Both the position numbers and the translations under genes were made by a program. Of a DNA stretch of 64,000 nt, positions 18,430-56,000 are shown piece after piece. The first letter of the stretch is position 1. Each line of letters opens with the position of its first letter. The stretch is from Macrostomum lignano (Eukaryota), in assembly GCA_002269645.1 (NCBI GenBank), contig NIVC01000249.1, positions 186,001 through 250,000 on the forward strand, read 5' to 3'. Under the pieces are notes generated by a model. That model did not search any database, was not told the DNA's origin, and saw only the letters and a program-made list of their open reading frames with translations.

Positions 18430-19312
18430 AGCAGGTAACTGTTATTAACTTATTAGGGACAGCAGGTAGCAGTTATTGGGGACAGCAGGTAGCAGTTATT
18501 GGGGACAGCAGGTAACAGTTATTGGGGACAGCAGGTAACAGTTATTGGGGACAGCAGGTAACAGTTATTGGGGACAGCAGGTAACAGTTATTGGGGACAG
18601 CAGGTAACAGTTATTGGGGACAGCAGGTAACAGTTATTGGGGACAGCAGGTAACAGTTATTGGGGACAGCAGGTAACAGTTATTGGGGACAGCAGGTAAC
18701 AGTTATTGGGGACAGCAGGTAACAGTTATTGGGGACAGCAGGTAACAGTTATTGGGGACAGCAGGTAACAGTTATTGGGGACAGCAGGTAACAGTTATTG
18801 GGGACAGCAGGTAACAGTTATTGGGTACAGCAGGTAACAGTTATTGGGTACAGCAGGTAACAGTTATTGGGTACAGCAGGTAACAGTTATTGGGGACAGC
18901 AGGTAACAGTTATTGGGTACAGCAGGTAACAGTTATTGGGGACAGCAGGTAACAGTTATTGGGGACAGCAGGTAGCAGTTATTGGGGACAGCAGGTAACA
19001 GTTATTGGGGACAGCAGGTAAAAGTTATTGGGGACAGCAGGTAACAGTTATTGGGTACAGCAGGTAACAGTTATTGGGTACAGCTGGTAACAGTTATTAG
19101 GGACAGCAGGTAACAGTTATTGGGTACAGCAGGTAACAGTTATTGGGTACAGCAGGTAACAGTTATTGGGTACAGCTGGTAACAGTTATTGGGGACAGCA
19201 GGTAACAGTTATTGGGGACAGCAGGTAACAGTTATTGGGGACAGCAGGTAACAGTTATTGGGGACAGCAGGTAACAGTTATTGGGGACAGCAGGTAACAG
19301 TTATTGGGTACG
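18430..19312. repeat. 23-nt minisatellite (ACAGCAGGTAACAGTTATTGGGG), ~37 units
   Basis: Highly homogeneous tandem array. Confidence 0.95.
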
Positions 19313-30639: not shown

Positions 30640-31575
30640 GAGCGCTGTGTTGCATCCTTCTACATCAGCTGTCTAATTCATCTATGGCTAAATCCTATTC
30701 AGCGCTGTGTTGCATCCTCCTACTTCAGCTGTCTAATTCGTCTATGGCTAAACCCCATTCAGCGCTGTGTTGCATCCTTCTACTTCAGCTGTCTAATTCG
30801 TCTATGGCTAAACCCCATTCAGCGCTGTGTTGCATCCTTCTACATCAGCTGTCTAATTCGTCTATGGCTAAACCCCATTCAGCGCTGTGTTGCATCCTTC
30901 TACTTCAGCTGTCTAATTCGTCTATGGCTAAACCCCATTCAGCGCTGTGTTGCATCCTTCTACTTCAGCTGTCTAATTCGTCTATGGCTAAACCCCATTC
31001 AGCGCTGTGTTGCATCCTTCTACATCAGCTGTCTAATTCGTCTATGGCTAAACCCCATTCAGCGCTGTGTTGCATCCTTCTACTTCAGCTGTCTAATTCG
31101 TCTATGGCTAAACCCCATTCAGCGCTGTGTTGCATCCTTCTACTTCAGCTGTCTAATTCGTCTATGGCTAAACCCCATTCAGCGCTGTGTTGCATCCTTC
31201 TACTTCAGCTGTCTAATTCGTCTATGGCTAAATCCTATTCAGAGCTGTGCTGCATCCTCCTACTTCAGCTGTCTAATTCGTCTATGGCTAAATCCTATTC
31301 AGAGCTGTACTGCATCCTCCTACTTCAGCTGTCTGATTTGTATATGGCTAAATCCTATTCAGAGCTGTGCTGCATCCTCCTACTTCAGCTGTCTGATTTG
31401 TATATGGCTAAATCCTATTCAGAGCCGTGTTGCATCCTCCTACTTCAGCTGTCTGATTTGTCTATGGCTAAATCCTATTCAGAGCTGTGTTGCATCCTCC
31501 TACTTCAGCTGTCTGATTTGTCTATGGCTAAATCCTATTCAGAGCTGTGTTGCATCCTTCTATACTTCAGCTGTC
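30640..31575. repeat. 60-bp tandem satellite, ~16 units
   Basis: Exact 60-nt period (sequence lines align), with polarised variants toward the 3' end. Confidence 0.97.
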
Positions 31576-32719: not shown

Positions 32720-33590
32720 ATGGCCACTCCAGCGAGTCCGTCACTGAGCAATGATTTGGAGATTCTTGGAAAAGCTTTATTTCTTGCACGTGAGAAGATA
32801 CGAAAGATTGGCGTAGCACTTATAATTCCAAAAGAACATCTTTATTCTGTAGATATTAATACAGAAGTTATCAACTCGAATTTGCCATTAATTATTGAAT
32901 TCAGAAGCACTCTGAAGGACTGCATTCGCACTGCCGAATCGTTGATTATTAAAGTATCAGGCATTTACAAGAATTACTTAAAATGTCTTGAAGAGCTGAA
33001 AAACATTGCGAAGTCGGGAACTCTGAAAACTAAAATTCCGAAAGCATGAAGGACACATTGACCAAGCTCGTCAGAAACTTTGAAGGATTCGGACGTGAAT
33101 TGGGTGAATTTGTGGAGCGCGTAAATGAGTTGCAGAGAGTGTCGGAGAGAGTGAAGGATGAGGCAACTTGGGAGGAACAGAAAGTTAAACAAGAGGCGGC
33201 CAGCGCGAGATCGGGGGCCCAGTCGGAAAGTCTTCTCCAATGGACGGCCGGCATTGCCACACCGGGCCTCATCACTCTAGGTAGCAGCTTCCAGGACTCG
33301 GTAAAGGCGAACAACGAACGGTATGAGAGGGCAGATGAGCTGGATGCCATTTTCCGAAAGTTCAACAGGGTTCGAGAAGTGCTGGACGACGCTTTTCGAA
33401 AAATCAACCGTGTTGCAGAAAGAATCGGGAGCCGTCCTGTCCAGCTTACAGAAGAAGTAACTCAGGTTATCCGAGCTGTTCTCCTGCAGTACGAGAAGAT
33501 TGCTGAAAGCAGAAAGCCGCTGAATTGAAGGAAAAAATGGAACGCAATCGCAGGGAGATATGGAGGAGATGAGAAAAAACCTGGGAAAGT
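32720..33590 (+). pseudogene. Disrupted copy of the helical ClyA-like protein family
   Basis: Homologous to 36772-37728 and 42815-43771. Frameshift near 33030-33046 (the ORF splits) and deletion plus premature stop in the C-terminal coil near 33510-33528. Confidence 0.8.
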
Positions 33591-35791
33591 AGCTAGCTGA
33601 TCGGCTTCTTATTCTGGACTCGTTGACTGAAATAATTTTCAAATTTTACTTCAGATTTTGACTAAAGAATGAAGCCGTGAAATCATGTTGCTTTATGGTT
33701 TTTCGAGAATAAAAATTTTCAGACTAAAAAGAAAGTTGTAACTTTATATATGCGAGCGTAAAATCACCCTCTTCAGTGTGTCCAACTTTTTTAGCCTAAT
33801 ATTTCAACTCACCTGAGATTTTTTAATTGTTAACTTATAGTACTTGTACTAATTCGTCAATATTTAAAAAATATAATCTGCAGGTGCGTGACACTCAATA
33901 GTTAGTTATCCTTACCGATATGGTTCACTATCTGAAATCTCTCTTTATTTGGCTGGCCATTGCTTACACTTTTTTGTTTGATTTTAGTTGTTATTCAATA
34001 AAAACCAATATTTCATCCAGCATCTTGCAAAGCGTTGTGAAATCATCGCGTATTCAGCATTTTATTAATGAAAGACATGCTCAAGTAGCCAATAGTTCAC
34101 TAAGTTCAGTGACCAACAGTTCAGTAGCCAATAGTTCAGTATAACAAACATCTTGCAGAACGCAGCGTGCAATGGATACTGAATCAAAGTAGCGTGCACA
34201 ACAAGCAACAGCAAGCAAAAGCATTAGAGGTGTGCACTGTAAAAATAAAAAGGGAATTTCATGCTGATACCTGTTGCAATCCTAAGCTAATTGAGAAAAG
34301 CATAGTTTAGTAGAGCTCTTTGCAGTGCTATGTAATTAAAAACAATATGCCTGATATATTCTGGAACAAATCTGGCTCTGAAGAAGTCGGATCTTTCTGG
34401 CACAGATGCTTTTTAATCGAATTTTTCTATGGCCAAACCTCATTCAGCGCTATGCGTTCTCTGGAGCATACTGAATGCACTGGCGACACGACCAACTTAG
34501 GTTTCTTTCTCCGGCTTGTTTGTCCTCACGGGCCCAACACGGGCTGAAACTAAACAAATTTATCGAAGAAAAAAATAATCGGCCGATCCAGCACCGAATT
34601 CCAGATGCTGCCTGTCTCCACACTGTCTCTGCAGTCTCCAGTTTGCACTGCACAATCGGCCATATTGGCAAGCGACAGGCCGCGTCGACATGAAAAATTC
34701 CAGCATGTCCGCAGCGCGCCATCGCTCACAGCCTGTCATGTGGCCGGGGCCAACACGAGTGCACAGGATAGAAAAATTTAGTAGCTGCTTAAATCGAATG
34801 TCCATGGGGCATAGACCTTTCCTTTGCTCCATGACTAAGTCTCTACTGCCCTGTTGGTTCACTTTTAATCTGCCCGTTTTCAGCACGATTGTAGCGAAAA
34901 AGCCGTGGGTTTGAATCGCATCACTCTTACTAAAAATCTGAGAAAAGTTAGAAAAGTTTTCAATGTCTGAGTCCACGTTTCCACCCCGACACCAGTTGTC
35001 AACTAGTGATAGCTTTAATCCAACTATTAGCCACAATTCTCCAGTTTCTCCTGGGGCATTGTGACGCAATTGCATCGCCCACACAGTTGAGACAACAAAG
35101 AACCGCACGCGTCAAGTAAATTGCGTTCGTATTAAAACGTATTTAAAAACCCCTGCTTTTATCTATAGGCTAAGTCGTATGCAAGGCCTGAGAACATCTC
35201 CAGGAACACACTTGAGATCTGCCTCAGTCGAATAACTATCCGACGATCGAACTTAGAAAAGCTTGTAAAGTCCGACCCTGAGATTGTTGCTATACATAAC
35301 GCCAAGTCCTTTCTTTACATTTAGCATTTCAAAGCTATTCAACATGGCTTACTCAGTTTGCTTAGGATCGCTAAGGATGCCAGGAGGAAGTTCCCTTTTC
35401 ATGTTTTAAAGTGCACACCTCTAGCTATTGCTTGTTATGCACTCTCCTTTGTGGCTTTGTCTCGATATTTGTTGCAGCACGATTGTACAATCTACTGTAC
35501 TGCATACGCTCGTAGAAGGCGGAAGTTCCCTTTTAAATATGCATCCCAATCCTACAATGGGTTATCCGGATAGATGCACTCGTAACTTAACTGTTGGTCA
35601 CTGAAGCAACTTCAGCATGTTTTCATTAAATAAACTGCTAATGTCGCCATGTCTTTTCACTTCGCTTTTGCCGAGTTTTGATGAAAATTAGATTTTTATT
35701 GAACAACAACTGTCGAATAGACAATAAACTAATAGAACGAGATATAAGTGGTGCAGAAAGGAAGAGAGGGGAAAGAAGTGAAGGGCCTAAG

Positions 35792-36180
35792 CATGGATGA
35801 ATGAATAGAATGGATTGCTATTCTGGCTCTGGCTATTTTCGTTTTTGACTCTTTTGCATCCGGTTCCCCCCGTGCCTTTTCATTGGTTGATGATTGCCAT
35901 AGACAGTTTTCGGCCTTCGCCCCTTTCTTTCGATGCACAAGCGCAAAGAACTGAGAATGTCAGTTACTTGCAGAGAATATCGAGCGCTCGTAGGTCTTCC
36001 CCCTTTATTTCAAAACACGAGCGAAAGCGCTTGTGCATCGAAAGAAAGGGGCGAAGGCCGAAAATTGTCTATGGCAATCATCAACCAATGAAAAGGCACG
36101 GGGGGGAACCGGATGCAAAAGAGTCAAAAACGAAAATAGCCAGAGCCAGAATAGCAATCCATTCTATTCATTCATCCATG
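35792..36180. mobile_element. MITE, 389 bp, ~155-bp terminal inverted repeats, 8-bp TSD (hAT-like)
   Basis: Arms 35792-~35944 and ~36026-36180 are reverse complements (CATGGATG..CATCCATG). Flanks GGCCTAAG and GGCCCAAG match at 7 of 8 positions. Confidence 0.85.
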
Positions 36181-36771
36181 GGCCCAAGCCGCGGGTTGAA
36201 GTTGTATTTATACTAACAATGATGAACAGGCCAGCCAAATTGTCTGTGGTAAATGAACGGTTACGATAGTCTGTGGAAAAGGCATGGTAGACAAAGGGAG
36301 ACGGCTAACTGAAAAGTACAAGGTAATAGAAAATACAAATATTTGGAGGATGGAAATCCGACAACTCACAGCAAACACAAAAATTTAAGCAATGGCCGGT
36401 CAAATAAAGAGAGAAATTCCAGGCAATCAATCATATCGTTAAGGATAACTTGTGAGTCTCAGACACTAGCAGATAAAAAAATGAAATCGTATTGATACGC
36501 TACAATACGAGCTACAATTTCAGTCTAACTATCGTACTTGACAATTAAAATTTATCAGGCGAGTTGAAATATCAAGTTAAAAGGAGACACACTGAAGCTG
36601 GTGATTTTATATATAAAGAGAGTTACTACGCTTGCTTTAGTCTGAAAATGTTTATCCGCATAAGATCATTAAAAACACGATTTCACCGCTTCATTCAATA
36701 AGGCAAAGTCTGGAGTAAAAATTAAATATGATTTCAGTCAGCAAGTCCAGAATAAGAAGCCCATCAGCCTG

Positions 36772-37728
36772 CTACTTTCCTTGGTTTTTTTTCATCTTCT
36801 CCATCTCCCTCCGCATGCGTTCCATTTCTTCCTTCATTTTAGCATTCTCCTTCTTTGATTCAGCGGCCTCCTGCTCTGCTCTAGCGGCTCTTTCCTCTGC
36901 TTCAACAGTTTGCTGCTGAGCTTGGGCAGCCTGTTGCTGAGATTCAGCAATCTTCTCGTATTGTAGGAGAACAGCTCGGATAACCTGAATTACTTCTTCT
37001 GTAAGCTGGACAGGACGGCTTCCGATACTTCCCGCAACACCGTTGATTGTTTGCAAAGCGACGTCCAGCAGTTGTCGAGCCTCCTTGAACTTTCGGAAAA
37101 TGGCATCCAGGTCATCTGCCCTCTCATACAGTTCGTTGTTCGCCTTTACCGAGTCCTGGAAGCTGCTACTTAGAGTGATGAGGCCAAATGTGGTGATTCT
37201 GGCCGTCCATTGACAAACATTGTTCCACTGGGCCTCCGATCTCGTGCTGGCCGCCTCTTTTCGAACTTTCTGTTCCTCCCGAGTTGCCTCATCCTTCACT
37301 CTCTCCGACACTCTCTGCAATTCTTTTACACGCTCCACAAATTCACCCAATTCACGTCCAAATCCTTCAAAGTTTTCGAGGAGCTTGGTCAACGCGTCTG
37401 TCATGTTTTTAACATTTTCAGTTGTCAGAGTTCCCGAATTCGCAATGTTTCTCAGCTCTTTCAGGCATTCTGAGTGATTCTTGTAAATGCCTGCCACTTT
37501 TCCACACAACGATTCGGCAATGCGAAGGCAGTCCTTCACAGTGTTTTTAAATTCCTGAAGGGATGGCAAAGTCACGTTGATGGAGTCCGTATTATTATCT
37601 ACCGACTCGAGTTGTTCCTTTGCCTTTCTTAGTTCTCCGCCAATCTCGCATATCTCCTTACATGCATTGAAAGCTTTTCCAAGACTCTCCAAATCCTTGC
37701 CAAGTGAGGAACTCGCTGGAGTCGCCAT
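36772..37728 (-). CDS. 318-aa all-helical protein with a central hydrophobic tongue; candidate ClyA/Hbl/Nhe-type alpha-pore-forming protein (copy A)
   Basis: Intronless ORF starting MATPASS. Amphipathic helices flank W174TARITTFGLITLSSSF190; C-terminal coiled coil. The ORF is solid; the fold assignment is inference. Confidence 0.7.
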   Translation of the reverse strand: MATPASSSLGKDLESLGKAFNACKEICEIGGELRKAKEQLESVDNNTDSINVTLPSLQEFKNTVKDCLRIAESLCGKVAGIYKNHSECLKELRNIANSGTLTTENVKNMTDALTKLLENFEGFGRELGEFVERVKELQRVSERVKDEATREEQKVRKEAASTRSEAQWNNVCQWTARITTFGLITLSSSFQDSVKANNELYERADDLDAIFRKFKEARQLLDVALQTINGVAGSIGSRPVQLTEEVIQVIRAVLLQYEKIAESQQQAAQAQQQTVEAEERAARAEQEAAESKKENAKMKEEMERMRREMEKMKKNQGK

Positions 37729-38373
37729 TTCTCTAAAAGTCAAAGTCAAATCTTATTAAAAATATTGATCAACGAAGGTAAAATCCGATTATCGGTTCAG
37801 AAATATGCCTCTGATATTAGCAGGATTGCCATAATTGCATACCGTTATAATTATAGCTATATTTCAAGAATGCGAGCACTTACCCGGAATGAGACGCTCT
37901 CGTTGCTGTTCTGCCCTTGCAACTTTGTAAGTGCTTAGATTTCTGTGCTATTATATGGGCCAAAGTAGAAGTTCCCTTTCTGCCGAATACGTAAAAAATT
38001 CGTGCTCAAGGCCAGCAGTGTGTACGAGTACGCTCGTACGCATCTGCTTGGCAAGTCGAAGTTCCATTTTCTTGGTCGGTCTCGCAGTTTGTGTGTATTA
38101 TTCGTACATAGAGGGCGAAAAATAATGCAGTACACACAATGTGCTCGGTTGATATACAAAAACTGAAGTTCCATATTAACCGTGCTCATTTAGCTCAGTG
38201 CATTTTTAAATTGATGCTGCAAGCGGGCCAATCCAGTGGCTTGTTTGTCTCCTGCCCATGCCTGTCGTTCACATTTCACTCTACAAATACCTGGCATCTT
38301 AGCCTCCTGAAGCGCAATCCTTTTCTACCCGCAACAGTTTTCATCACTCAAACCACAATTGTTCGATAAAATC

Positions 38374-39222
38374 ATGTCCGTACTTACAATATTTGAGAGT
38401 TCGCCCGAAAGTACTGTCAAAAAAGCCAACAAGTTTAAGCTGAAGCAGAACTGGACTCCAGCAGGAAGAAAATTTAAGGAAGCCGCTGAGCTCTACCGTC
38501 AGAAAGGGGAAGACTTTGAGGTGGCAAAGTGTCTGAGCGAGGCGGCCAACTGCTTCGTCAAGGATGACGCACGCTTAGCGATTCTGGCACTGAATGAGGC
38601 GGCTGGAATCCACGGCGAGCTCGGCCACGTAAACTTTGCTGCCGGAATGCACAAGAATGTCGCCGAGTGGGCGGTGGGTCTGGAGCGCAAGATGCCCGGA
38701 CACCTTCTCTGGACTGATGTTGGCGGCCACTCGCAGCTCGATCAGCAGGAACGCCAAGCCTTGGAGAAGGAGCTGCAAGAGTCTGCTCTGAGCCTGGCAG
38801 CCAGACAATATGCCAAGGCGGCTGATCTATACAGAATGGAAAATAGTCCAGCGAACGAGGCCGAGTGCCGCGAGGAGAGAGCCAAGGTCCTGGCTGACAA
38901 GGGCGATGGGCAGCGAGCTGCCGACGAGTTCAAGGAGCTGACGAGACACGCTGAAAAGCACGAGCTGCTCAGCGCCAGAAAGCACGCGTTCCAGGCCTGT
39001 CTGTGCAGACTGGCGGCCGGACTGGACCCGGAGGTGGACGAGATCGGACGGGAATGTCCGGACTTTGCCAGGTCCGACCACAGCCAGTTGGTGCGGGACC
39101 TGGCCGCGGCTGCAAGTGAGACGGCTGTGATGGAGGCCCGGCGCAACTTTGAGAAGTTCAACGAGTTCGACAAATGGCAGGAGAGGCGGTTCGCCGAAGT
39201 GAAGCGCGGGAAGATACAGTGA
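38374..39222 (+). CDS. Divergent, N- and C-terminally truncated alpha-SNAP (NSF attachment protein) homologue, intronless CDS
   Basis: KANKFKLKQNWTPAGRKFKEAAELY..FEVAKCLSEAANCFVK..AAGMHKNVAE..YAKAADLYRME..AFQACLC..PDFARSD..FDKW tracks the alpha-SNAP TPR-like helices (AANMFKMAKNWSAAG..AAKHH.SIAE..SADYYKGE..FKAALC..PAFSDSRE..LDQW). Confidence 0.85.
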   Translation: MSVLTIFESSPESTVKKANKFKLKQNWTPAGRKFKEAAELYRQKGEDFEVAKCLSEAANCFVKDDARLAILALNEAAGIHGELGHVNFAAGMHKNVAEWAVGLERKMPGHLLWTDVGGHSQLDQQERQALEKELQESALSLAARQYAKAADLYRMENSPANEAECREERAKVLADKGDGQRAADEFKELTRHAEKHELLSARKHAFQACLCRLAAGLDPEVDEIGRECPDFARSDHSQLVRDLAAAASETAVMEARRNFEKFNEFDKWQERRFAEVKRGKIQ

Positions 39223-39619
39223 CAGCTCAAGAACCGTCGAGAACTACCGAGGAGCGAACTGATGTGAACATGACATTGTACTTTAATAGAACTGAACTTC
39301 AAATCTAACGCTAAGACTTGTTCTTGGATCAAAGAATATAAGATCTATGCCTTGGATACATGGGTCTAAAATTGTCGCACATGATTAATGGGATTCTACA
39401 ATAAAAATTAATTATTTTCAAGCAAAAATTATTACTCTTTAATATCGTTCATCTTGATTATAAAGCAATACATTCTGAAGTAAAAATTCATACCTAACAT
39501 TTTGCGAACTGTTTTTAGAAGAAGCATAACCCACATTATCAATGCATCGTTTCCTTAATTTCGAACTCTTATAATAATAATAACAAAATAATTGATTACA
39601 CCTGCCTAATTGGGCAGAC

Positions 39620-39844
39620 TTTTGAAGGCTGCGGGCTGTTCAGCTCAAGGACTGGGGGGGGGGGGTCCTCCCACATACCCCCAATTACCCCAGCTAATGC
39701 TGACACCCATTTTACAGCTGGGTGAACTGAAGCAATGCAGAGTTAAGTGTTTGCTCAAGGACACAAATTGTTCTGATTGGGTCGAGAATCGAACCCCCGA
39801 CCTTTCAGTTGTGAGTCCGACGCTCTAGCCACTTGGCTACAACC
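39620..39844 (-). mobile_element. tRNA-derived SINE family A, most complete copy
   Basis: Reverse strand reads GGTTGTAGCCAAGTGGCTAGAGCGTCGGACTCACAACTGAAAGGTCGGGGGTTCGATTCTCGACC followed by the TGTGTCCTTGAGCAAACACTTAAC core. Confidence 0.8.
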
Positions 39845-39914
39845 TCTTCTCTTATGAACTCGTATGCGCTTCATGCAAGTAAACCAATAAAGGTAGATAA
39901 ATGTAAAAAAAATT

Positions 39915-40030
39915 AATAATAATTATTACCCATCCAACCGGGCTACTACATCCTCTAAACAGAGTCAGAGCTGCTCAGCTCAGTGGACAATGGGTCGGGC
40001 TCTTCATGGCTTAATTGTGCAGCTCAATTC
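39915..40030 (-). mobile_element. Short LINE 3'-end fragment
   Basis: Homologous to 44876-44970; TAA/T-rich tail on the minus strand. Confidence 0.55.
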
Positions 40031-41424
40031 CATGAGGTACGTAATGTACGCATTTTTCGGAAAACTTGCCTCTTAAAATTTTCCAAGAAACGTAGCTTTC
40101 CGTCAATCCTAATTGCGTTGTCCTAGATTTGTCTATGGCGAAACCTCATTCAGCGCAATACGTTCTCGAGAGCTCACTAAATTCACTGGCGAAACGATAA
40201 GTTTACGTTCCTTTCCAGCTTTCTAAGAAAATCGTCCTGCGACATGCTACAAGTACTTCGGCTGCCCATGTTTAAACCATCTCACGGGCCCAACCGGACT
40301 GAAAATAAATTTGTTTATCGGAAAAAAGATCTGCCGATCCAGCACCGAATTCCAGATGCTGCCTGTCTCCACACTGTCTCTGCAGTCTCCAGTTTGCACT
40401 GCACAATCGACCATGTTGGCAAGCGACAGGCCGCGTTAACATGAAAACTTCCAGCATGTCAGCAGCGCGCCATCGCTCACAGCCTGTCATGTGGCCAGGG
40501 CCATCACGAGTGCACAGGATAAAAAAATCAAGTAGCAGCTTTAATCCAATGTCCATGGTGCATAGACCTTTCTTTTCCTCCATGAATAAGCCCTATTGGT
40601 TCACTTTTAATCTGTCTGTTTTCACCATGATTGTAGCGTAAAGGCCGTGGGTTTGAATCGCGTCACTCTTACTGAAAATCTGAGAAAAAATCTCAGTGTC
40701 TGAGTCCACCCATTCACACCTCAGCAACATGTTTTAGCTTAAAATCCAACTCTTAGCCACAATTCTCCAGTCTCTCCTGGGACATTGTGACGCAATTGCA
40801 TCTTCCACACAGTTGAGACAACAAAGAACCGCGTGCGTGGTGTAAATTGCATTCGTCACTTGAGGCTGAGATCTGAGGAGAGTTCTCAGATTGGAGAAAA
40901 TCCGTGCAGCTGTTAAAATAGTTGTCCAAATGCAAATAATAGCTATTCGTATTAAAACGTATTTAAAACCCCTGCTTTTACCTATAGGCTGAGTTGTATG
41001 CAAGGCCTGAGAACATCTTCAGGAACACACTTGAGATCTGCCTCAGTCGAATAACTATCCGAAGATCAAACTTAAATAAAACTTCTAAAGTACGACTCTA
41101 AGGTTGTTTGTATGCATAACGTCAAGTCCTTTACATTTAGCATTACAAAAGCTATTCAGCATGGTAACTCAATTTACGTAGGATCGCTAAAAATGCCAGA
41201 AGGAAGTTCCTCCTAATTGCTATTGCTTGATATGCACTCTCTGTAGTACGATTGTACATTGTACTGTACTGCATGCGCTCGTAGAAGGTGGAACTTCCCT
41301 TTTAAATGTACATCCCAATCCTACATTGGGTAGCCAGAGAGATGCGTATGGATGGAGTTTGGTAGATTTACTGAAATTCCCAGGTGAGCACTGACTGTCT
41401 ACATGATTTTGATGTTTTCGATTC

Positions 41425-41485
41425 GAGTGAGGGCTTACCGCCAGATGAGAGGACTTTGAGGTAGCCAAATGTCTGAGCCAGGCAT
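41425..41485 (+). pseudogene. Internal alpha-SNAP-like relic
   Basis: TACCGCCAGATGAGAGGACTTTGAGGTAGCCAAATGTCTGAGCCAGGCA matches 38494-38545 (YRQ..DFEVAKCLS.A). Confidence 0.7.
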
Positions 41486-41489
41486 TGCT

Positions 41490-42590
41490 TACTGAATTGT
41501 TGGTCACTGAACTATTGGTCACTGAACTATTGGTTACTAAATTGTTGGTCACTGAACTGTTGGTCACTGAACTATTGGTCACTGAACTATTGGTCACTGA
41601 ACTATTGGTCACTGAACTATTGGTCACTGAACTATTGGTTACTAAATTGTTGGTCACTGAACTGTTGGTTACTGAACTGTTGGTCACTGAACTATTGGTC
41701 ACTGAACTATTGGTCACTGAACTATTGGTTACTAAATTGTTGGTCACTGAACTGTTGGTTACTGAACTGTTGGTCACTGAACTGTTGGTCACTGAACTAT
41801 TGGTCACTGAACTATTGGTCACTGAACTGTTGGTCACTGAACTGTTGGTCACTGAACTGTTGGTTTACTGAACTATTAGTCACTGAACTGTTTGTTTACT
41901 GAACTGTTGGTCACTGAACTGTACTTGGTCACTGAACTGTTGGTTTACTGAACTATTAGTCACTGAACTGTACTTGGTCACTGAACTGTTGGTCACTGAA
42001 CTGTACTTGGTCACTGAACTGTTGGTCACTGAACTGTTGGTCACTGAACTGTACTTGGTCACTGAACTGTTGGTCACTGAACTGTACTTGGTCACTGAAC
42101 TATTGGTCACTGAACTGTTGGTCACTGAACTGTTGGTCACTGAACTGTTGGTCACTGAACTGTTGGTCACTGAACTGTTGGTTACTGAACTGTTGGTCAG
42201 TGAACTGTTGGTCACTGAACTGTTGGTTACTGAACTGTTGGTCACTGAACTGTTGGTCACTGAACTGTTGGTCACTGAACTGTTGGTCACTGAACTATTG
42301 GTCACTGAACTATTGGTCACTGAACTGTTGGTCACTGAACTATTGGTCACTGAACTATTGGTCACTGAACTGTTGGTCACTGAACTATTGGTCACTGAAC
42401 TATTGGTCACTGAACTATTGGTCACTGAACTATTGGTCACTGAACTATTGGTCACTGAACTGTTGGTCACTGAACTATTGGTCACTGAACTATTGGTCAC
42501 TGAACTATTGGTCACTGAACTATTGGTCACTGAACTATTGGTCACTGAACTATTGGTCACTGAACTATTGGTCACTGAACTGTTGGTTAC
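41490..42590. repeat. 15-nt minisatellite (ACTGAACTATTGGTC), ~70 units
   Basis: Directly visible; gives the spurious TNSSV/LVTEL ORFs. Confidence 0.97.
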
Positions 42591-42814
42591 CTATGGCCGG
42601 CCAAATAAAGAGAGATTTCAAGCAATCAATCATATCGTTAAGGATAACTTGTGAGTCTCACACACTTACAGATAAAAAACTAAAATGGCAAATAATACAC
42701 TACAGGACAAGCTACTATTACAGTATAAATATTGACGAATTGGAATATATATCGTACTTAACAATTAAAATATATCAGGCGAGTTGAAATATCAAGATAA
42801 AGCCGATCAGCTGG

Positions 42815-43771
42815 CTACTTTCCTTGGTTTTTTTTCAACTCCTCCAGCTCTCTTCGCAGGCGTTCATTTTCTGCCTGCGCTTCAGCTTCCTTCTTCTTCA
42901 ATTCAGCGACCTCCTGCTCTGTTATAGCGGCTTTCTCCTCTGCTTCAATGCTTTTCTTCTGAGCTTGGAGAGCCTGTTGCTGAGCTTCAGCAATCTTCTG
43001 ATATTGTAGGAGAACAGATTGGATAAGCTGAATTACTTCTTTTGTAAGCTGGACAGGACGGCTCCCGATTCTTTTCCCAACACCGTTGATTGTTCGCAGA
43101 GCGACGTCCAGCAGTTGTCGAGCCTTCTCGAACTTTTGAAAAAGTTTATCCAGTTCTTCTGCCCTATCATACCGTCTCTTGTTCGCATCTACCGAGGCCT
43201 GATAGTAGCTTGTTTGAGTGATGAGGCCAAATGTGGTGATTAATTCCATCCATTGATAAAAATTGTTCCAGTCGGCCTCCGATCTCGTGCTGGCCGCCTC
43301 TTTTCGAACTGTCTCTTCCTCCCGAGGTGTCTCATCTTTCACTCTCTCCGACACTCTCTGCAACTTTTTTATGCGCTCCACAAATTCATCCAAGTCACGC
43401 CCGAATCTTTCGAAGTCTTCGACGAGCTTGGTCAACGCGTTTTTCATGCTTTCAGCATTTTCATTTGTCAGAGTTCCCGAATTCGCAATGTTTTTCATCT
43501 CTTCGAAACATTTTGAGTGATCTTCGGCAATGCCTGCCACTTGACTATGCAACGATTCGGCAATGCGAAGGCAGTCCTTCACAACGTCTTTAAATTCCCG
43601 AAAGGGCAGCAAAGTCACGTTGATGGTGTCTGCACTAGTATCGACTGACTTGAGTTGTTCTTTTGCCTTTTTAAGTTCTTCGCCAATCTCTTTTATCATT
43701 ACACATGCATTGAAAGCTTTTCCAAGACTCTCCAAATCCTTGCCAAGTGAGGAACTCGCTGGAGTTGCCAT
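42815..43771 (-). CDS. 318-aa helical ClyA-like protein (copy B)
   Basis: Intact and colinear with copy A (same length, identical first 23 aa). Tongue segment WMELITTFGLITQTSYY. Confidence 0.7.
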   Translation of the reverse strand: MATPASSSLGKDLESLGKAFNACVMIKEIGEELKKAKEQLKSVDTSADTINVTLLPFREFKDVVKDCLRIAESLHSQVAGIAEDHSKCFEEMKNIANSGTLTNENAESMKNALTKLVEDFERFGRDLDEFVERIKKLQRVSERVKDETPREEETVRKEAASTRSEADWNNFYQWMELITTFGLITQTSYYQASVDANKRRYDRAEELDKLFQKFEKARQLLDVALRTINGVGKRIGSRPVQLTKEVIQLIQSVLLQYQKIAEAQQQALQAQKKSIEAEEKAAITEQEVAELKKKEAEAQAENERLRRELEELKKNQGK

Positions 43772-44479
43772 TTCTCTAAAAGGCAAAGTCAAATGATATT
43801 AAAGAAGCACCCCCCAGCAACGAGAGAGGCAGATAAAACGCCACTTTTCAGTTCAGAAAGATGCGTATGATAATAGCAGGGCTTTCATAGTTGCAATTGT
43901 ATAATAATAAAGCCGTTGGCTCAATAATGCGTGCACTTACTCGTACCCGGAAGTGAGACGCTCTGGTTGCTGTTCTGCACTTGTACCTTTGTAGGTGCTT
44001 AGATTGATTTGGTATTGTATTAGTTAACAACTTATATTTATGAATCTAATGTTTATCAAAAGTAGAAGTTCCCTTTCTGTCGAGTATGCACACAGCTCGT
44101 ACTTCAGGTCAGCACTGTGTACACGCCTGCTTGGCAAGTCAAAGTTCTATCTTTCTTGCTCGTTCTCGCAGTTCTCATTGTGACTATATTCGCACAGAGG
44201 GTTATAAAATCTTGCAGTTCACACAATGTGCTTGGTTGATGAACAGGCAAAAATTGAAGTTCCATATAAGCCGTACTCATTCAGTTGTGCATTCTTAATT
44301 TTATGCTGCAAGCCCACCAATCCAGTGGCTTGTTTGTCTCCTGCCCCCAGTGGGTGTGAACACAACACATCCACAGGCCGGGCATTCAATGTATTTAGCC
44401 AGGCATTGTTTGACTTCTGAAGTGTGTTAATTTAATCTGTTTATAGCTACTCAAAACATTTTTCACGATTCAAACTATT

Positions 44480-48114: not shown

Positions 48115-49415
48115 CTGGGATCTAATCTCATGCCAATCTGCTCTGTAGTGAATCTAATCTCATGATAATAGGATCCTATCTGTATAATCTTTAAATAATA
48201 AGATCTTATTTAGATCTAATCTCATGATAACAAGACCTGAGCTTGATCTAATCTCATGATAATAGGAGCTGTTTGATCTAATCTCATGATAATAGGATCT
48301 GTTTGATCTAATCTCATAATAATAGGAGCTGTTTGATCTAATCTCATGATAATAGGATCTCAGCTTGATCTAATCTCATAATAATAGGATCTGTTTGATC
48401 TAATCTCATGATGATAGGAGCTGTTTGATCTAATCTCATAATAATAGGATCTGTTTGATCTAATCTCATGATAATAGGATCTGTTTGATCTAATCTCATA
48501 ATAATAGGATCTGTTTGATCTAATCTCATGATAATAGGAGCTGTTTGATCTAATCTCATGATAATAGGATCTGTTTGATCTAATCTCATAATAATAGGAG
48601 CTGTTTGATCTAATCTCATGATAATTGGATCTCAGCTTGATCTAATCTCATAATAATAGGATCTGTTTGATCTAATCTCATGATAATAGGATCTGTTTGA
48701 TCTAATCTCATGATAATAGGAGCTGTTTGATCTAATCTCATGATAATAGGATCTCAGCTTGATCTAATCTCATGATAATTGGAGCTGTTTGATCTAATTT
48801 CATGATAATAGGAGCTGTTTCATCTAATCTCATGATAATAGGATCTGTTTGATCTAATCTCATGAAAATAGGATCTCAGCTTGATCTAATCTCATGATAA
48901 TATGATCGCAGCTTGATCTAATCAAATAATAATAGGAGCTATTTGATCTAATTTCATAAAAAAATAGGAGCTGTTTGATCTAATCTCATAATAATATGAT
49001 CGCAGCTTGATCTAATTTCATGATAATTGGAGCTGTTTGATCTAATCTCATGATAATAGGATCTGTTTGATCTAATCTCATGATAATAGGATCTCAGCTT
49101 GATCTAATTTCATGATAATTGGAGCTGTTTGATCTAATCTCATGATAATAGGATCTGTTTGATCTTATCTCATGATAAAAGGATCTCAGCTTGATCTAAT
49201 CTCATGATAACAAGACCTCAGCTTGATCTAATCTCATGATAATAGCTGTTTGATCTAATCTCATGATAATAGGATCTGTTTCATCTAATGTCATGATAAT
49301 AGGATCTGTTTTGATCTAATCTCATAATAATTTGAGCTGCTTGATCTAATCTCATGATAAAAGGACCTCAGCTTGATCTAATCTCATGATAACAAGACCT
49401 CAGCTTGATCTAATC
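48115..49415. repeat. 30-nt minisatellite (TGATCTAATCTCATGATAATAGGATCTGTT)
   Basis: About 43 units upstream of the BAP18-like start, possibly in a 5'UTR intron. Confidence 0.95.
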
Positions 49416-50053
49416 TGATAATAGTAAGAATGATACCAACAAAATATTGCTCTATAATTGCACGAGTAACATTACTGGATGCACTCAGTCTCAAGCTACT
49501 TAGCCAGTACACAGTCGGATTTAAAAAAAAAATTCGTCTGCAAAGCGCCTCTGCAATACATTTAAAGAGAAATGTGAACAATGTATTTCATATCCAGCCA
49601 GCCAGACAAAAAGCAGTTACATAAAAATCCGACATATCAATGCCGACACAGACATAAAAGATAGACTGAAAATATTGATAAAGTTTATTAAGACACTGAA
49701 TAAAAATCTGGACGGAAATGACAATAATTCTATTTAATTAAGTGGATCTGAAGCCTTACAGCGCGTATATAAACTAAATTCCAAACTTTTTTCGCAATTT
49801 TTTACCTACTATGAGTAGTGCTGGGTGACAAAATTTATTTAGAACTATCGCATGTGTAAATAGTTATTTAAAATACAACATAGATTCTCCGCAGCGTACA
49901 TACTACTTAAGCTAGTAGTGTTAAACTATGGGCAGTGGCGGATCAACGCTCCATTGAGTAGGGGGGAGATGAACACGGATCCAGCGAGGTCAGGAAGTGC
50001 AGACAGACTGTTAGATGAGTTGGTGCTCAAAAAATCTTTTTTATTAGAAATCT

Positions 50054-53000
50054 TCATCTTCGTAACGGCGGCCCATGGGGCTCTGGGCTCGGGAGCTGCC
50101 GCCGGACCTCTGCTGCTGCTGGCCTGAGGCTGAGAAGCGGGCTGGGGAGGCGGCCCTGCAATGGGGGTGAGATGGGATCTGATCTGCTGATTCCACTCCA
50201 TTTGATGTGATTGTGGAATCTAATCCCACATTATAGAATCCAATCCCACATTATAGAATCTAATCCCACATTATAGAATCCAATCCCACATTATAGAATC
50301 TAATCCCACTTTATAGAATCTAATCCCACATTATAGAATCTAATCCCACATTATAGAATCTAATCACACATTATAGAATCTAATCCCACATTATAGAATC
50401 TAATCCCACATTATAGAATCTAATCCCACATTATAGAATCTAATCACACACTACGGAATCGAATCTCACACTACAGAATCTATAAAATCTAATCTTACAC
50501 TACGGAATCTATAGAAACTAATCTCACACTACGGACTCTATAGAATCTAATCTCACACTACGGACTCTATAGAATCTAATCTCACACTACGGACTCTATA
50601 GAATCTAATCTCACACTACGGACTTTATAGAATCTAATCTCACACTACGGACTCTATAGAATCTAATCTCACACTACGGAATCTATAGAATCTAATCTCA
50701 CACTACGGACTCTATAGAATCTAATCTCACAGTATAGAATCTAATCTCACACTACAAAATCTAATTTTTTCTTTAGAATTTAAAGACAACGAATTTTTAG
50801 CATATGGGATCTCACACTCTAGAATTCAATCTCACACTACAGAATCTAATCTCAGTCTACACTACCAGAGCATCTCAATCAAAGCTACCTGGCCGCGGCG
50901 CCAATCCTAGCAGCCAGGCGCTCCCGCTCGAAGCGCTCGGCGCAGAGCAGCCGCGCCAGCCGCTCGCTCTCGGCTTCGAGCTCGGCGCAGCGGGAGCGAA
51001 GTCGGCCGGTCTCGCGGGCGCCGGCGTCGGCACGGGCCTCGGCGGCGTCGGCGCGCTCGCGCTCCCGCTCCGCGTCCGAATCGGCCTCCTGGGCGGCGGC
51101 CCGGCAGCGGGCGGCCTCGTCGCGGCATTTGGCCAGGGCGCTGGCCAGACCCAGCCGGGCCTCGCGCTCGTCAGCCAGCGCTGCCTCCGTCCGGCCGGAC
51201 GTGTCCGAAATCTCGGACAGCTGGCCGGCTAGCTGCTCGCGCTCCGATTCGAGCTCGCCACGCTCCGCTTCTAGCTGGTCTTTGTCCGCCTCCAGCTGCT
51301 CTTTGTCGGCCTCCAGCTGGGAGCACAGATCGCGCAGGGCGGCCAGGTCGGCAAAGGCGGCCTGAAGGGGAGCCGGACGGGAGTTGACTGCACATGAATT
51401 CGAACCTGGGTGTGGTGCGCAGCCTATGCGTGTACAATGCCCTTTCTCTTGCTCTCTAGCCAACGTGCTCAGTACCCCAATTTATTGCGTAACTCATAGC
51501 TGCACGTCGGCAGCTGCGTGAATATATATCGCAAATATACGGCTCTTAGAGGCCAAGATTCTTACCCGCCAAGCGGACTACGAGTACTACAATGGCGTCG
51601 CAGCTAAACTTACCAAGCCCAGCGCGCTTGGACCTGCGAACAGACCCCAACACGGCCCAGACTAAATGGAAAAAGTGGTACGCACAATTTGAACTTTTCG
51701 CTGTGGCTGCAAACATCGAAGACAAAAAGCGGCTTCGCCAGCTTCTGCTGTATACAGCCGGAGAGGACTTGCAGTCGATTGCGGCCGGTCTCGGCGACAA
51801 AGAGGCAGCAGGCAAAGACGTCGAAACACTTGTAGCCGCGCTTAACGACTACTTCGACAGCAAGCGGAATCTCCCGTTCACCCGCTATCAGTTCAGGTTG
51901 TGCACACAGCGGTCCGGCGAGCCCATCGACGAATGGCTCCAGCGCCTCAAAGATGCTGCCGACTGCTGCGGCTTCGAGGGCCTCAGAGACTCCCTGATCC
52001 GTGACCAGGTGATCGCCGGCTGCAGTTCAGAGCAGCTTCGCCGCAAGCTGCTAGCGATCGACAATGTCGACCTGGAGCAGGCGCTTCGGGTGGCCAGAGC
52101 CATGGAGACAGCAGAGACTCAGGCAAGCCTCATGGAATCTAACGAGGCGGCGGTACAGCGACTTCGGCTTCGAGACACTGGTGCAGCGGCCTCATCAGCA
52201 GAGCGCCCAGTCAAGGGACCAGCCAAGCAGCAGCCAGGCAAGCAGACCACGTGCATCAGATGCGGAGTCCCGGGCCACCGCACATGCAACGCAGCCAGAG
52301 GCAAGACGTGCGAGCGCTGCGGAAAGCGAAATCACTTGGCGAGGGCCTGCCTCTCCCGGCCGTTGGAAGCCGTCCGCGCCCTGCAGGCCGACAGCGACAG
52401 CTCAGAGCCAGAGGACAGCATCTTCTGTCTGACCGTGGCGGCCACCGGGACGGCTACAGCGGGCGCCCGCACAACAGTGCTCGTCGACTCAACGCAGCTG
52501 GAAGTCCTGGTCGACAGCGGGGCCGACTGCAATATCTTGACAGAGAAAGCCTGGCGGAAACTGCCGCGACCCCCGCCGCTGCAGACAACTCGCACAAAGG
52601 TATTCGCCTTCCGCTCTTCAGAACCGCTCAGCATCCTGGGAGCCTGCAGCCTGCAGGTGACAACCGGCCAAGACAGCCAGGAGGTTCGCTTCATCGTCGT
52701 CCCCGGCGACGGCGTCAACATCCTGGGACGGGAGGCATCAACCTCACTCCGCCTTCTGAGCTTGGGGCCTCAGGTTCGCGCGATCGCAGCAGCCGAGACG
52801 GAGAACGCAGAGACCCTGGCGCTGGCCAAGCGATTTCCGGAGCTCTTCAAAGGCCTCGGAAAGGTCAAGGGTGTTTCGGTTCAGATTGGTATCAAGCCCG
52901 ACGCCAGGCCCGTCTGCCATCCGCCCTCTCGGGTACCAGTGCATCTCAGAGAGGCGCTGGACCGCGAGCTGGACGAGCAAGAGCGCCTGCAGATCATCCA

Positions 53001-56000
53001 GCCAGTAGAAGGCCCCACGCCATGGGTCAGTCGCATCGTCGTGGTACCGAAAGAAGACGGGAAGACCGTGAGGATCACCCAGGATTTGCGAGACGTTAAC
53101 AAGGCGGCCCTGAGGCAACGACACCAAATCCCGACTTTTGAAGAAGCTACCAGCGACATGACGGGGTCGACAATCTTCACCAAGCTCGACATCTTCAAGG
53201 CGTTTCATCAAATTGAGATCAGTGAGGACAGCCGCAAGTACTTCGTCTTCTCAACGCCCCGAGGGATGCGTCAGCTGACACGCCTGAGCATGGGATTCGC
53301 CTCCGCCTCGGAGATCCTGCAGCGCGTCATGCAGCAAGTGCTGGAAGGCCTCACTGGTGTCAAGTGGATCCACGACGACATCATCATCCACAGTCAGGGC
53401 CCTGAAGTTCACCAGGAACATGTGGCAGCCTGCCTGACCAGACTGCGTGACAATGGCATCACCCTGAATGCCAGCAAGTGCCGCTGGGGCATCGGCAAGG
53501 CCAAGTTCATGGCCATGACGCTCTCCAAGTTCGGCATTCAGCCATCAGAAGAGAAAATCGCAGAGCTGCAAGCATTCAAGGATCCACAGTCTGCCAAGGA
53601 AGTCCGGTCGTTTCTCGGCCTGGCCAATCACCTCGAGAAGTTCATGCCGCACCTTGCCGACAAAGCGGAGCCGCTGAGGCGACTAACACGGAAAGGCCAG
53701 GAATTCGTCTGGGACCGCGAGCAGCAGCAGTCCTTCCAGGCCGTCAAGGACTGCATCTCCGAGGGCTGCACGCTGGCCTTCTTCGACAAGCGGCTGCCGA
53801 CCGAGCTGGTGGTCGATGCGTCACCCGTCGGCGTCGGTGCCATTCTGCAGCAGCGGCACCCAAGCGGGCAGACGCGGCCGGTGGCCTACGCGAGCCGCAC
53901 GCTCAGTGACGTCGAACGGCGCTACAGCCAGATCGAGCGCGAGGCCCTGGGCGTCAAGTTCGGCTGCTTGAAGTTCGCGTTTTACCTGGAGGGCTGCCCG
54001 CACTTTGATATCTACACCGACCACAAGCCGCTGCTCGGGATCTACAGAGCAGACTCAAGGCCGCCGCCCCGGCTCGAGCGTATCATGCTGCAGACCCAGC
54101 ACTTCACGTTCACACTGCACTACCGCAAAGGCGAGGACAACCCGGCAGACCCGCTGAGCCGCAATCCGCTGACAAGCGCATCGTCACACAAAGACGAGGC
54201 TGAGGACACCAGACTGTGCAACGCCGTTGTCCAAGCGGCCACCCCAAAGGGCCTGACCGTCGACAGGATCCAGGCTGCGACCGAGAGAGACCCAGCTCTG
54301 GTGGTCGTCATGCGCGCCTTGGAAACAGGAAACTGGAGCTGCGGCGCGGCGAGCCCGGCGCACAGTTTTCGGTCCCTCAAAGACGAACTGAGCGTTCACG
54401 CAGGCCTTCTGCTCCGGGGAAACAGAATCGTGATCCCGGCAGAGCTTCAGCAGCTTACGATCGGTTTAGCGCACCAGGGCCACCTCGGACAGAAGAAGAC
54501 GTGCGACCGACTGCAGCGTAAGGTCTGGTGGCCCGGCATGTCCAAGCAGGTCGAGGCGGTCGTCACTAACTGCCTCCCGTGTCAAGCGGCCCGGACCGAC
54601 GGCGCCGTGAAACACCCGCCGATGCAGCCGACGCCGCTTCCGTCGGGGGCCTGGCAATCGCTCAGCGTCGACGTGTGCGGACCATTCCCAACGGGCGAGA
54701 ACGTAGTTGTCTTGGTGGACTACTTCAGCCGCTACCCGGACCTCTACGTGGTGCGCAGCCTCACCAGCGCCAGCGTCATCAACTGCGTCATTGCCTCATT
54801 CAGCCGCTTCGGTGTGCCGCAGCAGATCACTACGGACAACGCCACCTACTTCACGAGCGAAGAATTCAACGTGTTTCTGGACGGCCTCGGGGTTCGACAG
54901 CGCAGGGTCACCCCACTCTACCCGGCGGCGAACGGCGAGGTGGAGCGCTTCAACCGCAGCCTCAACAAGGCCATCAACGCCGCCACGGCCGAAGGCAACG
55001 ACTGGCGGCGGGCGATCCACGAGTGGCTGCTCGGATACCGCAACTCTGTGCACCGAGGCACCGACCGCACGCCCAACGACCTCATGTTCAACCGAGAGAC
55101 CGGCGACATCCTACCATCTGGCCTGACAAAGCAAACTGGCAGCTCCGGACGGCAGCTGCAGCTCCACGACCGCGGCTACAAGCAGGCGATGCGCAAGGCG
55201 GCCGACACGCGGCGTTCGGCTGCGCCACACGGCATCCTGGCAGGCGCCCGCGTGCTGCTCAGAAACCGCGGCAAGGCCAAGCTGCGCTGTCCGTTCGACC
55301 CGCGGCCTTGGCTTGTCAAGGCAGTCAGCGGCGGCGCCCTGACTCTGCAACGCGGCATGGCAGTCATTCGGCGGCATGTGACCGAGACGAAGCCGCTTCG
55401 TGAGCGCCCCTGGGACCTTGACGAGATGGACGGCGATCAGCGGCCGGGGGCGCCTGTGACAGAGGCAAATTCGGCCAACGACGGTCCGATTGCGCAGAGG
55501 CCTCATCCCAGGACAGCAAAGCAGCCCGTCTGCTACAAGCAGTGACTTGATTCGAACTGAGCTGGAACGCTGTCAAAGATCGGCATGCTTTAATTGTTTA
55601 AGTATTTAATCGTTCGAAATCAAAAAAATTTGACACTGTTTTACTAATTAATTTTTTTTAATCCTTCACGTCGTTTCTTGACCAATTTTCGCAATGAAAT
55701 TTTAAACCCTCTCGTATTGGACTTTTCTTTTGCTTTGGGGGAGAGATGTGGTGCGCAGCCTATGCGTGTACAATGCCCTTTCTCTTGCTCTCTAGCCAAC
55801 GTGCTCAGTACCCCAATTTATTGCGTAACTCATAGCTGCACGTCGGCAGCTGCGTGAATATATATCGCAAATATACGGCTCTTAGAGGCCAAGATTCTTA
55901 CCCGCCAAGCGGACTACGAGTACTACACTGGGGAGTTGGGCGCATGATCTGGGAGGCTGGCCCAGCAACTGAGGATCTGAGAGGTTGGCCCAGCAACTAA

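Follow-up and report, generated by a model that had tools for sequence, protein, structure and literature searches.

We analyzed a 64,000-nucleotide stretch of the genome of the flatworm Macrostomum lignano (GenBank assembly GCA_002269645.1, contig NIVC01000249.1, positions 186,001 to 250,000 of the forward strand; hereafter the window), which contains a small cluster of paralogous genes for proteins predicted to be all-helical. These genes form a lineage-restricted, fast-evolving family whose reading frame has been kept despite rapid divergence. An original prediction, made from the letters of the window, had proposed that the family resembles the bacterial toxin ClyA (haemolysin E). We give a probability of about 0.35 to the reading that the proteins are ClyA-like, membrane-interacting helical bundles. 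Pore formation itself, like membrane binding and the biological role proposed below, is something that we infer, and it is doubtful. The ClyA likeness is best treated as a lead and not as a finding, with a fold that is plausible but unproven.

Three paralogues lie within positions 32720-43771 of the window, two of them intact (A and B) and one broken (C). Copies A (36772-37728) and B (42815-43771) are both encoded on the reverse strand, and each is an open reading frame (ORF) of 318 codons plus a stop that begins at the ATG of MATPASSS; the copy A protein is predicted to be all-alpha. Copy C, a pseudogene, extends from 32720 to 33592 on the forward strand, measured from its first to its last homologous base. 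It aligns to the full coding sequence (CDS) of copy A with 84.6% nucleotide identity, and in the register of A it carries three frameshifting and two in-frame indels and no stop codon created by substitution. The A and B proteins are 69-71% identical, in line with the estimate in the original prediction that about a third of their residues differ. Their DNA is 79% identical across 1568 bp that include ~500 bp upstream, and the DNA of copy C is 75-78% identical to that of A and B across more than 1 kb, a likeness far above chance among all three. Copy B matches UniProt A0A1I8J5V1 (P0002, M. lignano) at all but one residue, which bears out the assignment to an animal genome. Copy A is 68-69% identical to the M. 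lignano proteins P0001 and P0002, and 68% identical to the product of NCBI BOX15_Mlig008976g1 (hereafter A′), which is carried by a second segment on contig NIVC01003389.1.

The paralogues had been described as intronless, which is correct for the CDS, but the gene itself has an intron in its 5′ untranslated region (5′-UTR). In copy A this intron of 151 nt (GTAAGT...TTTTAG; 37733-37883, reverse strand) has a donor and acceptor that are kept in copy B and in the annotated intron of BOX15_Mlig008976g1. The intron of copy B is 165 nt long (43776-43940, reverse strand), with a conserved UTR exon block upstream of it to ~44005. The corresponding exon block of copy A lies at 37884-37941 on the reverse strand (its upstream limit is approximate) and, when translated, is 90% identical to residues 1-21 of the partial model P0001. 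A, B, A′ and C all retain this block. The annotated A′ model has a first exon of 62 nt followed by an intron of 170 nt (10063-10232 of its contig). The GTAAGT donor and polypyrimidine-TTTTAG acceptor are thus common to A, B and A′, in an intron of 151-170 nt that stops 4 nt short of the ATG. The GC content of A and B is 0.46-0.48 against a local value of 0.43. At third codon positions (GC3) it is 0.48-0.50, near the non-coding background, compared with 0.69 in the neighboring gene for a protein like soluble NSF attachment protein (SNAP) and 0.84 in a G protein-coupled receptor (GPCR) gene of the window. The helical genes are bona fide nuclear genes of M. lignano.

The second segment carries the same genes in an order that is reversed relative to the window: B′, a 15-bp satellite, the SNAP-like gene, A′ and C′. 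In the window, the SNAP-like gene and the satellite likewise sit between copies A and B. This shared gene order indicates that the triplication is older than the segment duplication, so that a local triplication giving C, A and B came first and was followed by duplication of the whole block. B′ contains three frameshifting indels, some of which may not be real given the long-read assembly. C′, which was broken independently of C, carries four in-frame indels together with two premature stops. Broken copies therefore make up one of three in the window and two of three in the second segment.

Beyond these loci, the family is found in M. lignano only. An exhaustive phmmer search of 1.84 billion representative proteins retrieved only two clusters, that of copy B itself and that of P0003, an intact 337-residue M. 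lignano paralogue with 33% identity. In 5.8 billion clusters, word-indexed searches that started from copy A, from a four-member profile or from residues 45-300 of P0003 returned nothing outside M. lignano, and scans of 185,579 prokaryotic genomes and of the JGI metagenomes by DNA pattern and tblastn detected no relative. No bacterial, archaeal, metagenomic or other animal relative was thus found in the collections searched and, as far as these reach, the family appears restricted to Macrostomum. The literature that we searched held nothing relevant on Mlig008976, on Macrostomum in combination with RPW8 or pore formation, or on ClyA-like proteins in metazoa or eukaryotes.

The rate at which these genes change is striking given that they remain open. 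By the Nei-Gojobori method, the ratio of nonsynonymous to synonymous divergence (dN/dS) is 1.00 for A/B (dS 0.165), 0.78 for A/A′ and 0.62 for B/A′, and for A/B it exceeds 2 in windows (codons 141-220) that flank a conserved motif termed the tip. The 147 differences between A and B are distributed 61/45/41 over codon positions 1/2/3. For A/A′, dN is 0.17, about four times that of the neighboring SNAP-like gene (0.03-0.05) in the same pair of segments. With three local copies and a further set in the second segment, the proposal of an amplified, fast-diverging family is confirmed. We simulated neutral evolution by scattering changes at random, equal in number and with an identical spectrum, and only 0.42% of the 5000 replicates were free of stops. 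The upstream flank of A and B, at a Jukes-Cantor divergence of 0.174 that equals that of the CDS, has accumulated 23 indel events in 502 bp. At that rate ~44 indels are expected in the 954-bp CDS, where not one frame-breaking indel is found. The scarcity of stop-free simulations and the lack of frame-breaking indels together show that the reading frame has been kept and the genes maintained.

Conservation is concentrated in residues 1-22, in the loops NSGTLT (96-102) and IGSRPVQLT (234-243) and in the tip. The N-terminal motif MATPASSSLGKDLESLGKAFNA (codons 1-22 of A; 37663-37728, reverse strand) is 100% identical between A and B, 95% identical to A′ and 59% identical to the distant P0003. The tip motif W..I.TFGLIT..S (codons 174-190 of A; 37159-37209, reverse strand) forms the densest run of invariant columns, among them W174 and F181-G182-L183-I184, and is 76% identical to P0003, against ~30% elsewhere in the protein. 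The motif strings quoted in the original prediction were recovered at the residues where it had placed them. The C-terminal tail (codons 267-318 of A; 36775-36930, reverse strand) is rich in Q, A, E and K, is modeled as one long helix of a coiled coil, and differs in length among paralogues in units of seven residues, A′ having a seven-residue repeat; judged from the sequences, such units are what a heptad coiled coil would be expected to give. Overall, the pattern fits a protein that is retained but whose helix surfaces can vary freely or are driven to vary. The diversifying selection that had been suggested is compatible with a dN/dS near 1 in a kept frame, but so is strongly relaxed selection, and three intact close sequences are too few to separate positive selection from relaxed constraint.

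Our AlphaFold models predict an all-helical protein, in agreement with the original prediction, albeit at low confidence. The full-length model, built from four sequences, has a predicted local distance difference test score (pLDDT) of 65.5 and a predicted template modeling score (pTM) of 0.53, with helices at residues 6-47, 55-98, 103-158, 164-185, 188-233 and 244-316. The second model covers residues 1-270 without the tail and used an alignment of six rows, in which the two open pieces of copy C were entered as separate rows; it reaches a pLDDT of 69.0 and a pTM of 0.57, with helices at 7-48, 55-98, 103-179, 188-235 and 237-269. The helix breaks agree in both models and coincide with the conserved loops NSGTLT and IGSRPVQLT. 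The models thus suggest, with low confidence, five long antiparallel helices in an elongated bundle, and we take the order of these long helices to be like that of the published ClyA structure. In the tail-less model, TFGLITLSS occupies a loop (180-187) at the tip of a long hairpin of helices 3 and 4, and the pLDDT falls below 50 at residues 181-184.

When the tail-less model was compared with the PDB by Foldseek, ~30 of the top 50 matches were toxins of the ClyA family. The best was AhlC (6h2e_Q), with template modeling (TM) scores of 0.47/0.49, a root mean square deviation (rmsd) of 6.4 Å over 237 columns and an E-value of 1.1e-2. Other matches were the AhlB pore (6grj, TM 0.47), YaxB (6ek8, 0.45/0.48), ClyA, MakA, MakE, PaxB and SmhB, and the remainder of the top 50 consisted of de novo bundles and of proteins from the sperm axoneme, most of which superpose with an rmsd above 20 Å. 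The full-length model drew a mixture of de novo bundles, XaxA, ClyA, AhlC, Hbl-B, MakA/E and BAR domains at TM 0.25-0.42. As a rough background, we also searched the viral library BFVD, which gave only generic coiled coils with similar E-values and mostly an rmsd of 20-50 Å. The E-values for ClyA-family entries are hence at background, but on our models the AhlC, AhlB and YaxB superpositions are distinctly better than background, and pore-forming toxins of the alpha type (alpha-PFTs) of the ClyA family are the only natural proteins that superpose moderately. In the proposed check of alpha-PFT likeness by AlphaFold and Foldseek, AhlC ranks best, but TM remains below 0.5, no match attains an E-value of 1e-3 and pLDDT is 65-69.

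Sequence and profile searches covered Pfam and NCBIfam at E<=10 for four family members, and the PDB with both a single sequence and a profile. No link was found in Pfam, NCBIfam or the PDB to ClyA/HlyE, Hbl/Nhe, Xax/Yax, Mak or ApoL. The profile matches in Pfam and NCBIfam were sub-threshold coiled-coil families (SMC, Rad50, SpiroCoCo, TACC and Laminin), along with a weak Pfam SesA match in two of the four members, which in copy A covers residues 11-78 and scores 19.2 bits (E 0.0014; the cut-off is 26.3 bits). In UniRef, automatic naming has made P0002 an 'RPW8 domain-containing protein' and P0003 an 'I/LWEQ domain-containing protein'. Both names look like weak automatic matches to helical sequence and unreliable, because they disagree within one family and are not reproduced by Pfam at E<=10. 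A talin/Sla2 THATCH (I/LWEQ) identity was rejected since Pfam I_LWEQ is absent from all four members, and a syntaxin/SNARE identity was rejected too: a SNAP-like gene is the neighbor, but neither the profiles nor the structural matches gave any such signal. ApoL, which the original prediction had offered as an alternative to ClyA, was likewise dropped, as Pfam ApoL is absent and no ApoL structure was matched. The N-terminus is hydrophilic with nothing resembling a signal peptide, as had been predicted. The hydrophobic segment placed at ~174-190 is conserved and predicted to lie between long helices, but it is short and only mildly hydrophobic: the tip has a mean Kyte-Doolittle value of ~1.4-1.7 over 11 residues, no 19-residue window exceeds 1.1, and hydropathy reveals no membrane-spanning segment. 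With Ile, Thr and Phe around a Gly (I-T-T-F-G-L-I-T-L-S-S), the tip is beta-prone within an otherwise helical protein.

In ClyA, the N-terminus and the tongue or head are the two membrane-inserting parts, and to our knowledge the ClyA family is known from bacteria only. Its toxins have an elongated tail domain, a bundle of antiparallel helices of ~45-80 residues each. The case for a ClyA-like bundle draws on the predicted helix plan, on the most conserved motif, which in our models sits exactly where the ClyA-family head does, and on the N-terminus and tip, which sequence comparison shows to be the two best-kept elements of the flatworm family. Members of the ClyA family share less than 20-24% identity, with some pairs at 6-9%; their head lies at the α3-α4 junction and is just 15 residues long in C components; and subunit Q of AhlC is an extended, YaxA/XaxA-like conformer (PMC6602965). 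The flatworm tip appears compatible with such 15-residue heads and not with a membrane-spanning head, and the flatworm protein, if it is a family member at all, may be nearer to the short-headed type than to ClyA itself. We envisage a protein closest to the AhlC, YaxA and XaxA type, whose working parts would be the N-terminus, which is amphipathic and invariant, the short tip joining helices 3 and 4, which is beta-prone and mildly hydrophobic, and the heptad-repeat tail. Such a protein would be held in solution by its bundle, would dip into a membrane with its conserved tip and would oligomerize through its tail. The variable helix surfaces would evolve fast because they face a partner that itself changes, for instance a symbiont or a pathogen, a paralogue, or a mate. 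More broadly, an animal could here encode the ClyA architecture for the first time, be it as members of the family or as convergent analogues. The proteins would then be endogenous, cytosolic, amplified and diversifying membrane-attacking effectors in immunity, cell death or reproductive/genetic conflict, old enough in the lineage to have lost all sequence likeness to bacterial toxins. We consider this wider proposal rather unlikely.

Several observations weigh against a ClyA-like bundle. In Pfam at E<=10, none of the four members, P0003 included, matches HlyE, Bacillus_HBL, RPW8, HeLo, ApoL or I_LWEQ; the PDB sequence searches yielded only noise and no alpha-PFT; NCBIfam gave just MakE at E=0.12 in one of four members, which is noise; and the SMC and Rad50 matches appear to be coiled-coil noise arising from sequence composition. 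The models are of low confidence, being built from 4-6 sequences, and differ precisely at the tip, where residues 164-185 form a separate short helix in one and continue helix 3 in the other. With either model, Foldseek found no match in the PDB at E<=1e-3 or TM 0.5. Any model with long antiparallel helices is, moreover, biased toward ClyA-family entries, since the PDB holds few other natural proteins so shaped, and de novo bundles score equally well or better. For the ClyA/Hbl/Nhe-like pore formers of the original prediction, ClyA-family toxins do predominate among the top matches of the tail-less model, but none of these is significant and no profile agrees. The tip itself is weakly hydrophobic and contains Thr, Ser and Arg. 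In addition, the protein has a cytosolic nature, and a secreted toxin role would need an unconventional route given the missing signal peptide; ClyA-family toxins lack a C-terminal coiled-coil tail, whereas the flatworm proteins have one. A dN/dS near 1 also fits weak constraint, in company with a GC3 near the non-coding background. The M. lignano expression papers that we consulted yielded no expression or localization data for the gene.

The alternative with the strongest claim, which we regard as just as probable as the ClyA-like bundle though short of an even chance, is an ordinary lineage-specific structural or scaffold coiled coil (cytoskeletal, ciliary or sperm-associated) with no membrane activity. 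Here the N-terminus and TFGLIT would make protein contacts, and fast evolution would mean either that the solvent-exposed faces of the helices are weakly constrained or that the protein serves reproduction. The sole profile matches are to generic coiled-coil families far under their cut-offs, microtubule inner proteins of the sperm axoneme occur among the Foldseek matches, the tail varies by heptad units, and neither a signal peptide nor a hydrophobic segment of transmembrane grade is present. A dN/dS near 1 and a low GC3 would be equally at home in such a protein, and reproduction-related genes are reported to be fast-evolving in Macrostomum (PMC7336406). This explanation accounts less well for the poor superposition of the axonemal and coiled-coil matches (rmsd 20-50 Å), for the conserved short loops that cut the chain into ~45-residue helices and so suggest a folded-back bundle instead of a long rod, and for a best-conserved element that is a beta-prone, semi-hydrophobic turn, unusual in a plain coiled coil. 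A bundle that, like exchangeable apolipoproteins or the BAR and F-BAR domains, associates with lipids or membranes without lysis, and that binds or shapes membranes or lipid droplets without making pores, is clearly unlikely. F-BAR and IMD domains do appear among the weak matches of the full-length model, and such a role would suit long amphipathic helices whose short hydrophobic tip might insert as a wedge in a single leaflet. Against this, the BAR-type matches have TM 0.16-0.25 and rmsd above 30 Å and nearly vanish with the tail-less model, and Pfam gives no BAR or apolipoprotein signal; BAR, F-BAR and I-BAR identities were rejected on the lack of a profile signal and on poor superposition on the crescent three-helix dimer unit.

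A four-helix-bundle cell-death domain of the MLKL/RPW8/HeLo/SesA type, as the UniRef name of copy B and the weak SesA match might suggest, is very unlikely. The SesA score is under its cut-off, Pfam RPW8 and HeLo are absent at E<=10, and the paralogue P0003 is named I/LWEQ instead. The predicted helices span 42-77 residues compared with ~25 in a compact four-helix bundle, and the top 50 Foldseek matches include no MLKL, HeLo, NRG1 or CC-R structure. RPW8/MLKL was accordingly among the identities rejected, with no compact N-terminal four-helix bundle (~120-150 residues) predicted and no profile above cut-off. It is highly improbable that the ORFs are decaying and non-functional, with A and B left open by luck under neutral drift. 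Such decay would agree with an A/B dN/dS of 1.00, differences that are not concentrated at third positions, a GC3 near background and the broken copies in both segments. It would leave unexplained why an ORF stayed open where so few simulations keep even one, and why none of the ~44 indels predicted has broken the frame; nor would it account for three intact genes (A, B and A′) alongside an intact paralogue at 33% identity, or for the conserved N-terminal motif, loops, tip and splice signals. Most improbable of all is that the lineage recently acquired a ClyA-family toxin gene from a bacterium by horizontal transfer. The intronless CDS and a predicted fold like that of bacterial toxins would favor it, and the original prediction had raised a horizontal origin, but this part of the proposal is unsupported in view of the conserved spliceosomal 5′-UTR intron, of base composition near the local level and of the failure to find any bacterial or archaeal relative in protein, cluster, prokaryotic-genome or JGI metagenome searches. 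The 33%-identical paralogue further implies long residence in the lineage.

Comparison of the flatworm proteins with known systems places the ClyA-like reading in context. The short-headed type represented by AhlC shares with them a length of ~260-340 residues, the elongated bundle of five long helices predicted for the flatworm proteins and, where helix 3 is predicted to turn into helix 4, a head of ~11-15 residues containing Ile and Leu. The structural likeness is below significance and comes from a low-confidence model. The type differs in that the flatworm genes are eukaryotic, have a spliceosomal intron and match it neither by sequence nor by profile; partner genes for long hydrophobic heads were not seen for the flatworm family; and the flatworm head, with Thr, Ser and Arg, is less hydrophobic and accompanied by an extra heptad-repeat tail. 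E. coli ClyA (HlyE) and B. cereus Hbl-B/NheA are of similar length and also possess a conserved element between the third and fourth long helices and a conserved amphipathic N-terminal helix. ClyA (4pho, 4phq and 1qoy) and Hbl-B (2nrj) are among the weak Foldseek matches, but at TM of just 0.25-0.40 (0.32-0.40 for the best ClyA matches) and rmsd of 9-15 Å. Unlike them, the flatworm proteins lack a long hydrophobic beta-tongue, and neither model contains a beta-hairpin. With the MLKL four-helix bundle, RPW8 (CC-R), HeLo and SesA domains, the flatworm protein has in common a cytosolic, helical character, the lack of a signal peptide and a conserved N-terminus, whereas its helices are about twice as long and no kinase, NB-ARC, NACHT or amyloid motif is attached. 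ApoL proteins, too, are helical, occur in animals, evolve fast and have been amplified; their C-terminus forms a coiled coil or zipper, and many ApoL members have no signal peptide. In contrast to ApoL, the flatworm proteins have no hydrophobic helical hairpin of membrane-spanning length.

If the ClyA-like reading is correct, an animal lineage with an amplified, fast-evolving set of proteins of ClyA architecture would widen the range of eukaryotic alpha-helical membrane-attack proteins beside ApoL, MLKL and gasdermin-type executioners, and M. lignano, which is amenable to transgenesis, would offer a tractable model. Even without any toxin likeness, the locus provides a clean case of a lineage-restricted family that preserves its reading frame and a handful of motifs, with the remainder of the protein changing at the speed of neutral DNA. 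It also illustrates that automatic database names (RPW8, I/LWEQ) are unreliable for this flatworm family.

The block that carries the helical genes contains further elements. The SNAP-like gene between A and B is an intron-free ORF of 287 amino acids (38359-39222, forward strand; Pfam SNAP E 4.5e-35), which as listed begins at TTG, with the first ATG 15 nt further downstream. Its copy in the second segment is divided into two ORFs, and between the segments it shows a dN of 0.03-0.05 and a dN/dS of 0.3-0.55. Directly downstream of copy B lies the 15-bp satellite ACTGAACTGTTGGTC, with ~72 copies at 41491-42587 and long spurious ORFs on both strands. The satellite is also found beside B′ in the second segment (5238-6334), and this matching place in both segments indicates that it is older than the segment duplication. 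A dispersed repeat of ~1 kb occurs at 34525-35577, downstream of copy C, and at 40281-41345, between the SNAP-like gene and the 15-bp satellite, in the same orientation and with 78-85% identity. Its ORFs have no Pfam match; the repeat may have belonged to the unit that was first duplicated, or it may be of an unclassified kind. A 60-bp minisatellite (30641-31575, 15.6 copies, 96% matches) that lies just upstream of copy C gives rise to spurious ORFs of 331 and 315 amino acids.

Elsewhere in the window, two ORFs at 4941-5438 and 7515-8747 (forward strand) contain partial CAP (cysteine-rich secretory protein/venom-allergen-like) domains, with E-values of 7e-7 and 3e-6, and are probably exons of one or two CAP-family genes. 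The GPCR is a rhodopsin-family receptor encoded by an intron-free ORF of 388 amino acids (19490-20656, reverse strand; Pfam 7tm_1 E 2.5e-53), whose GC3 of 0.84 contrasts with the 0.48-0.50 of the helical family. The pol gene of a long terminal repeat (LTR) retrotransposon forms an uninterrupted ORF of 1317 amino acids (51592-55545, forward strand) that encodes protease, reverse transcriptase, RNase H and integrase domains. The region around it is rich in repeats and has a high GC content (0.60-0.63). The density of minisatellites is unusually high, with ~25 distinct arrays of periods from 4 to 150 bp spread over the whole window, for example at 13511-14654 (a 23-mer in 50 copies), 18450-19308 (a 23-mer in 37 copies), 48119-49423 (a 30-mer in 43 copies) and 61680-63347 (a 32-mer in 53 copies), and these arrays account for many of the window's long ORFs, which are therefore artefacts.

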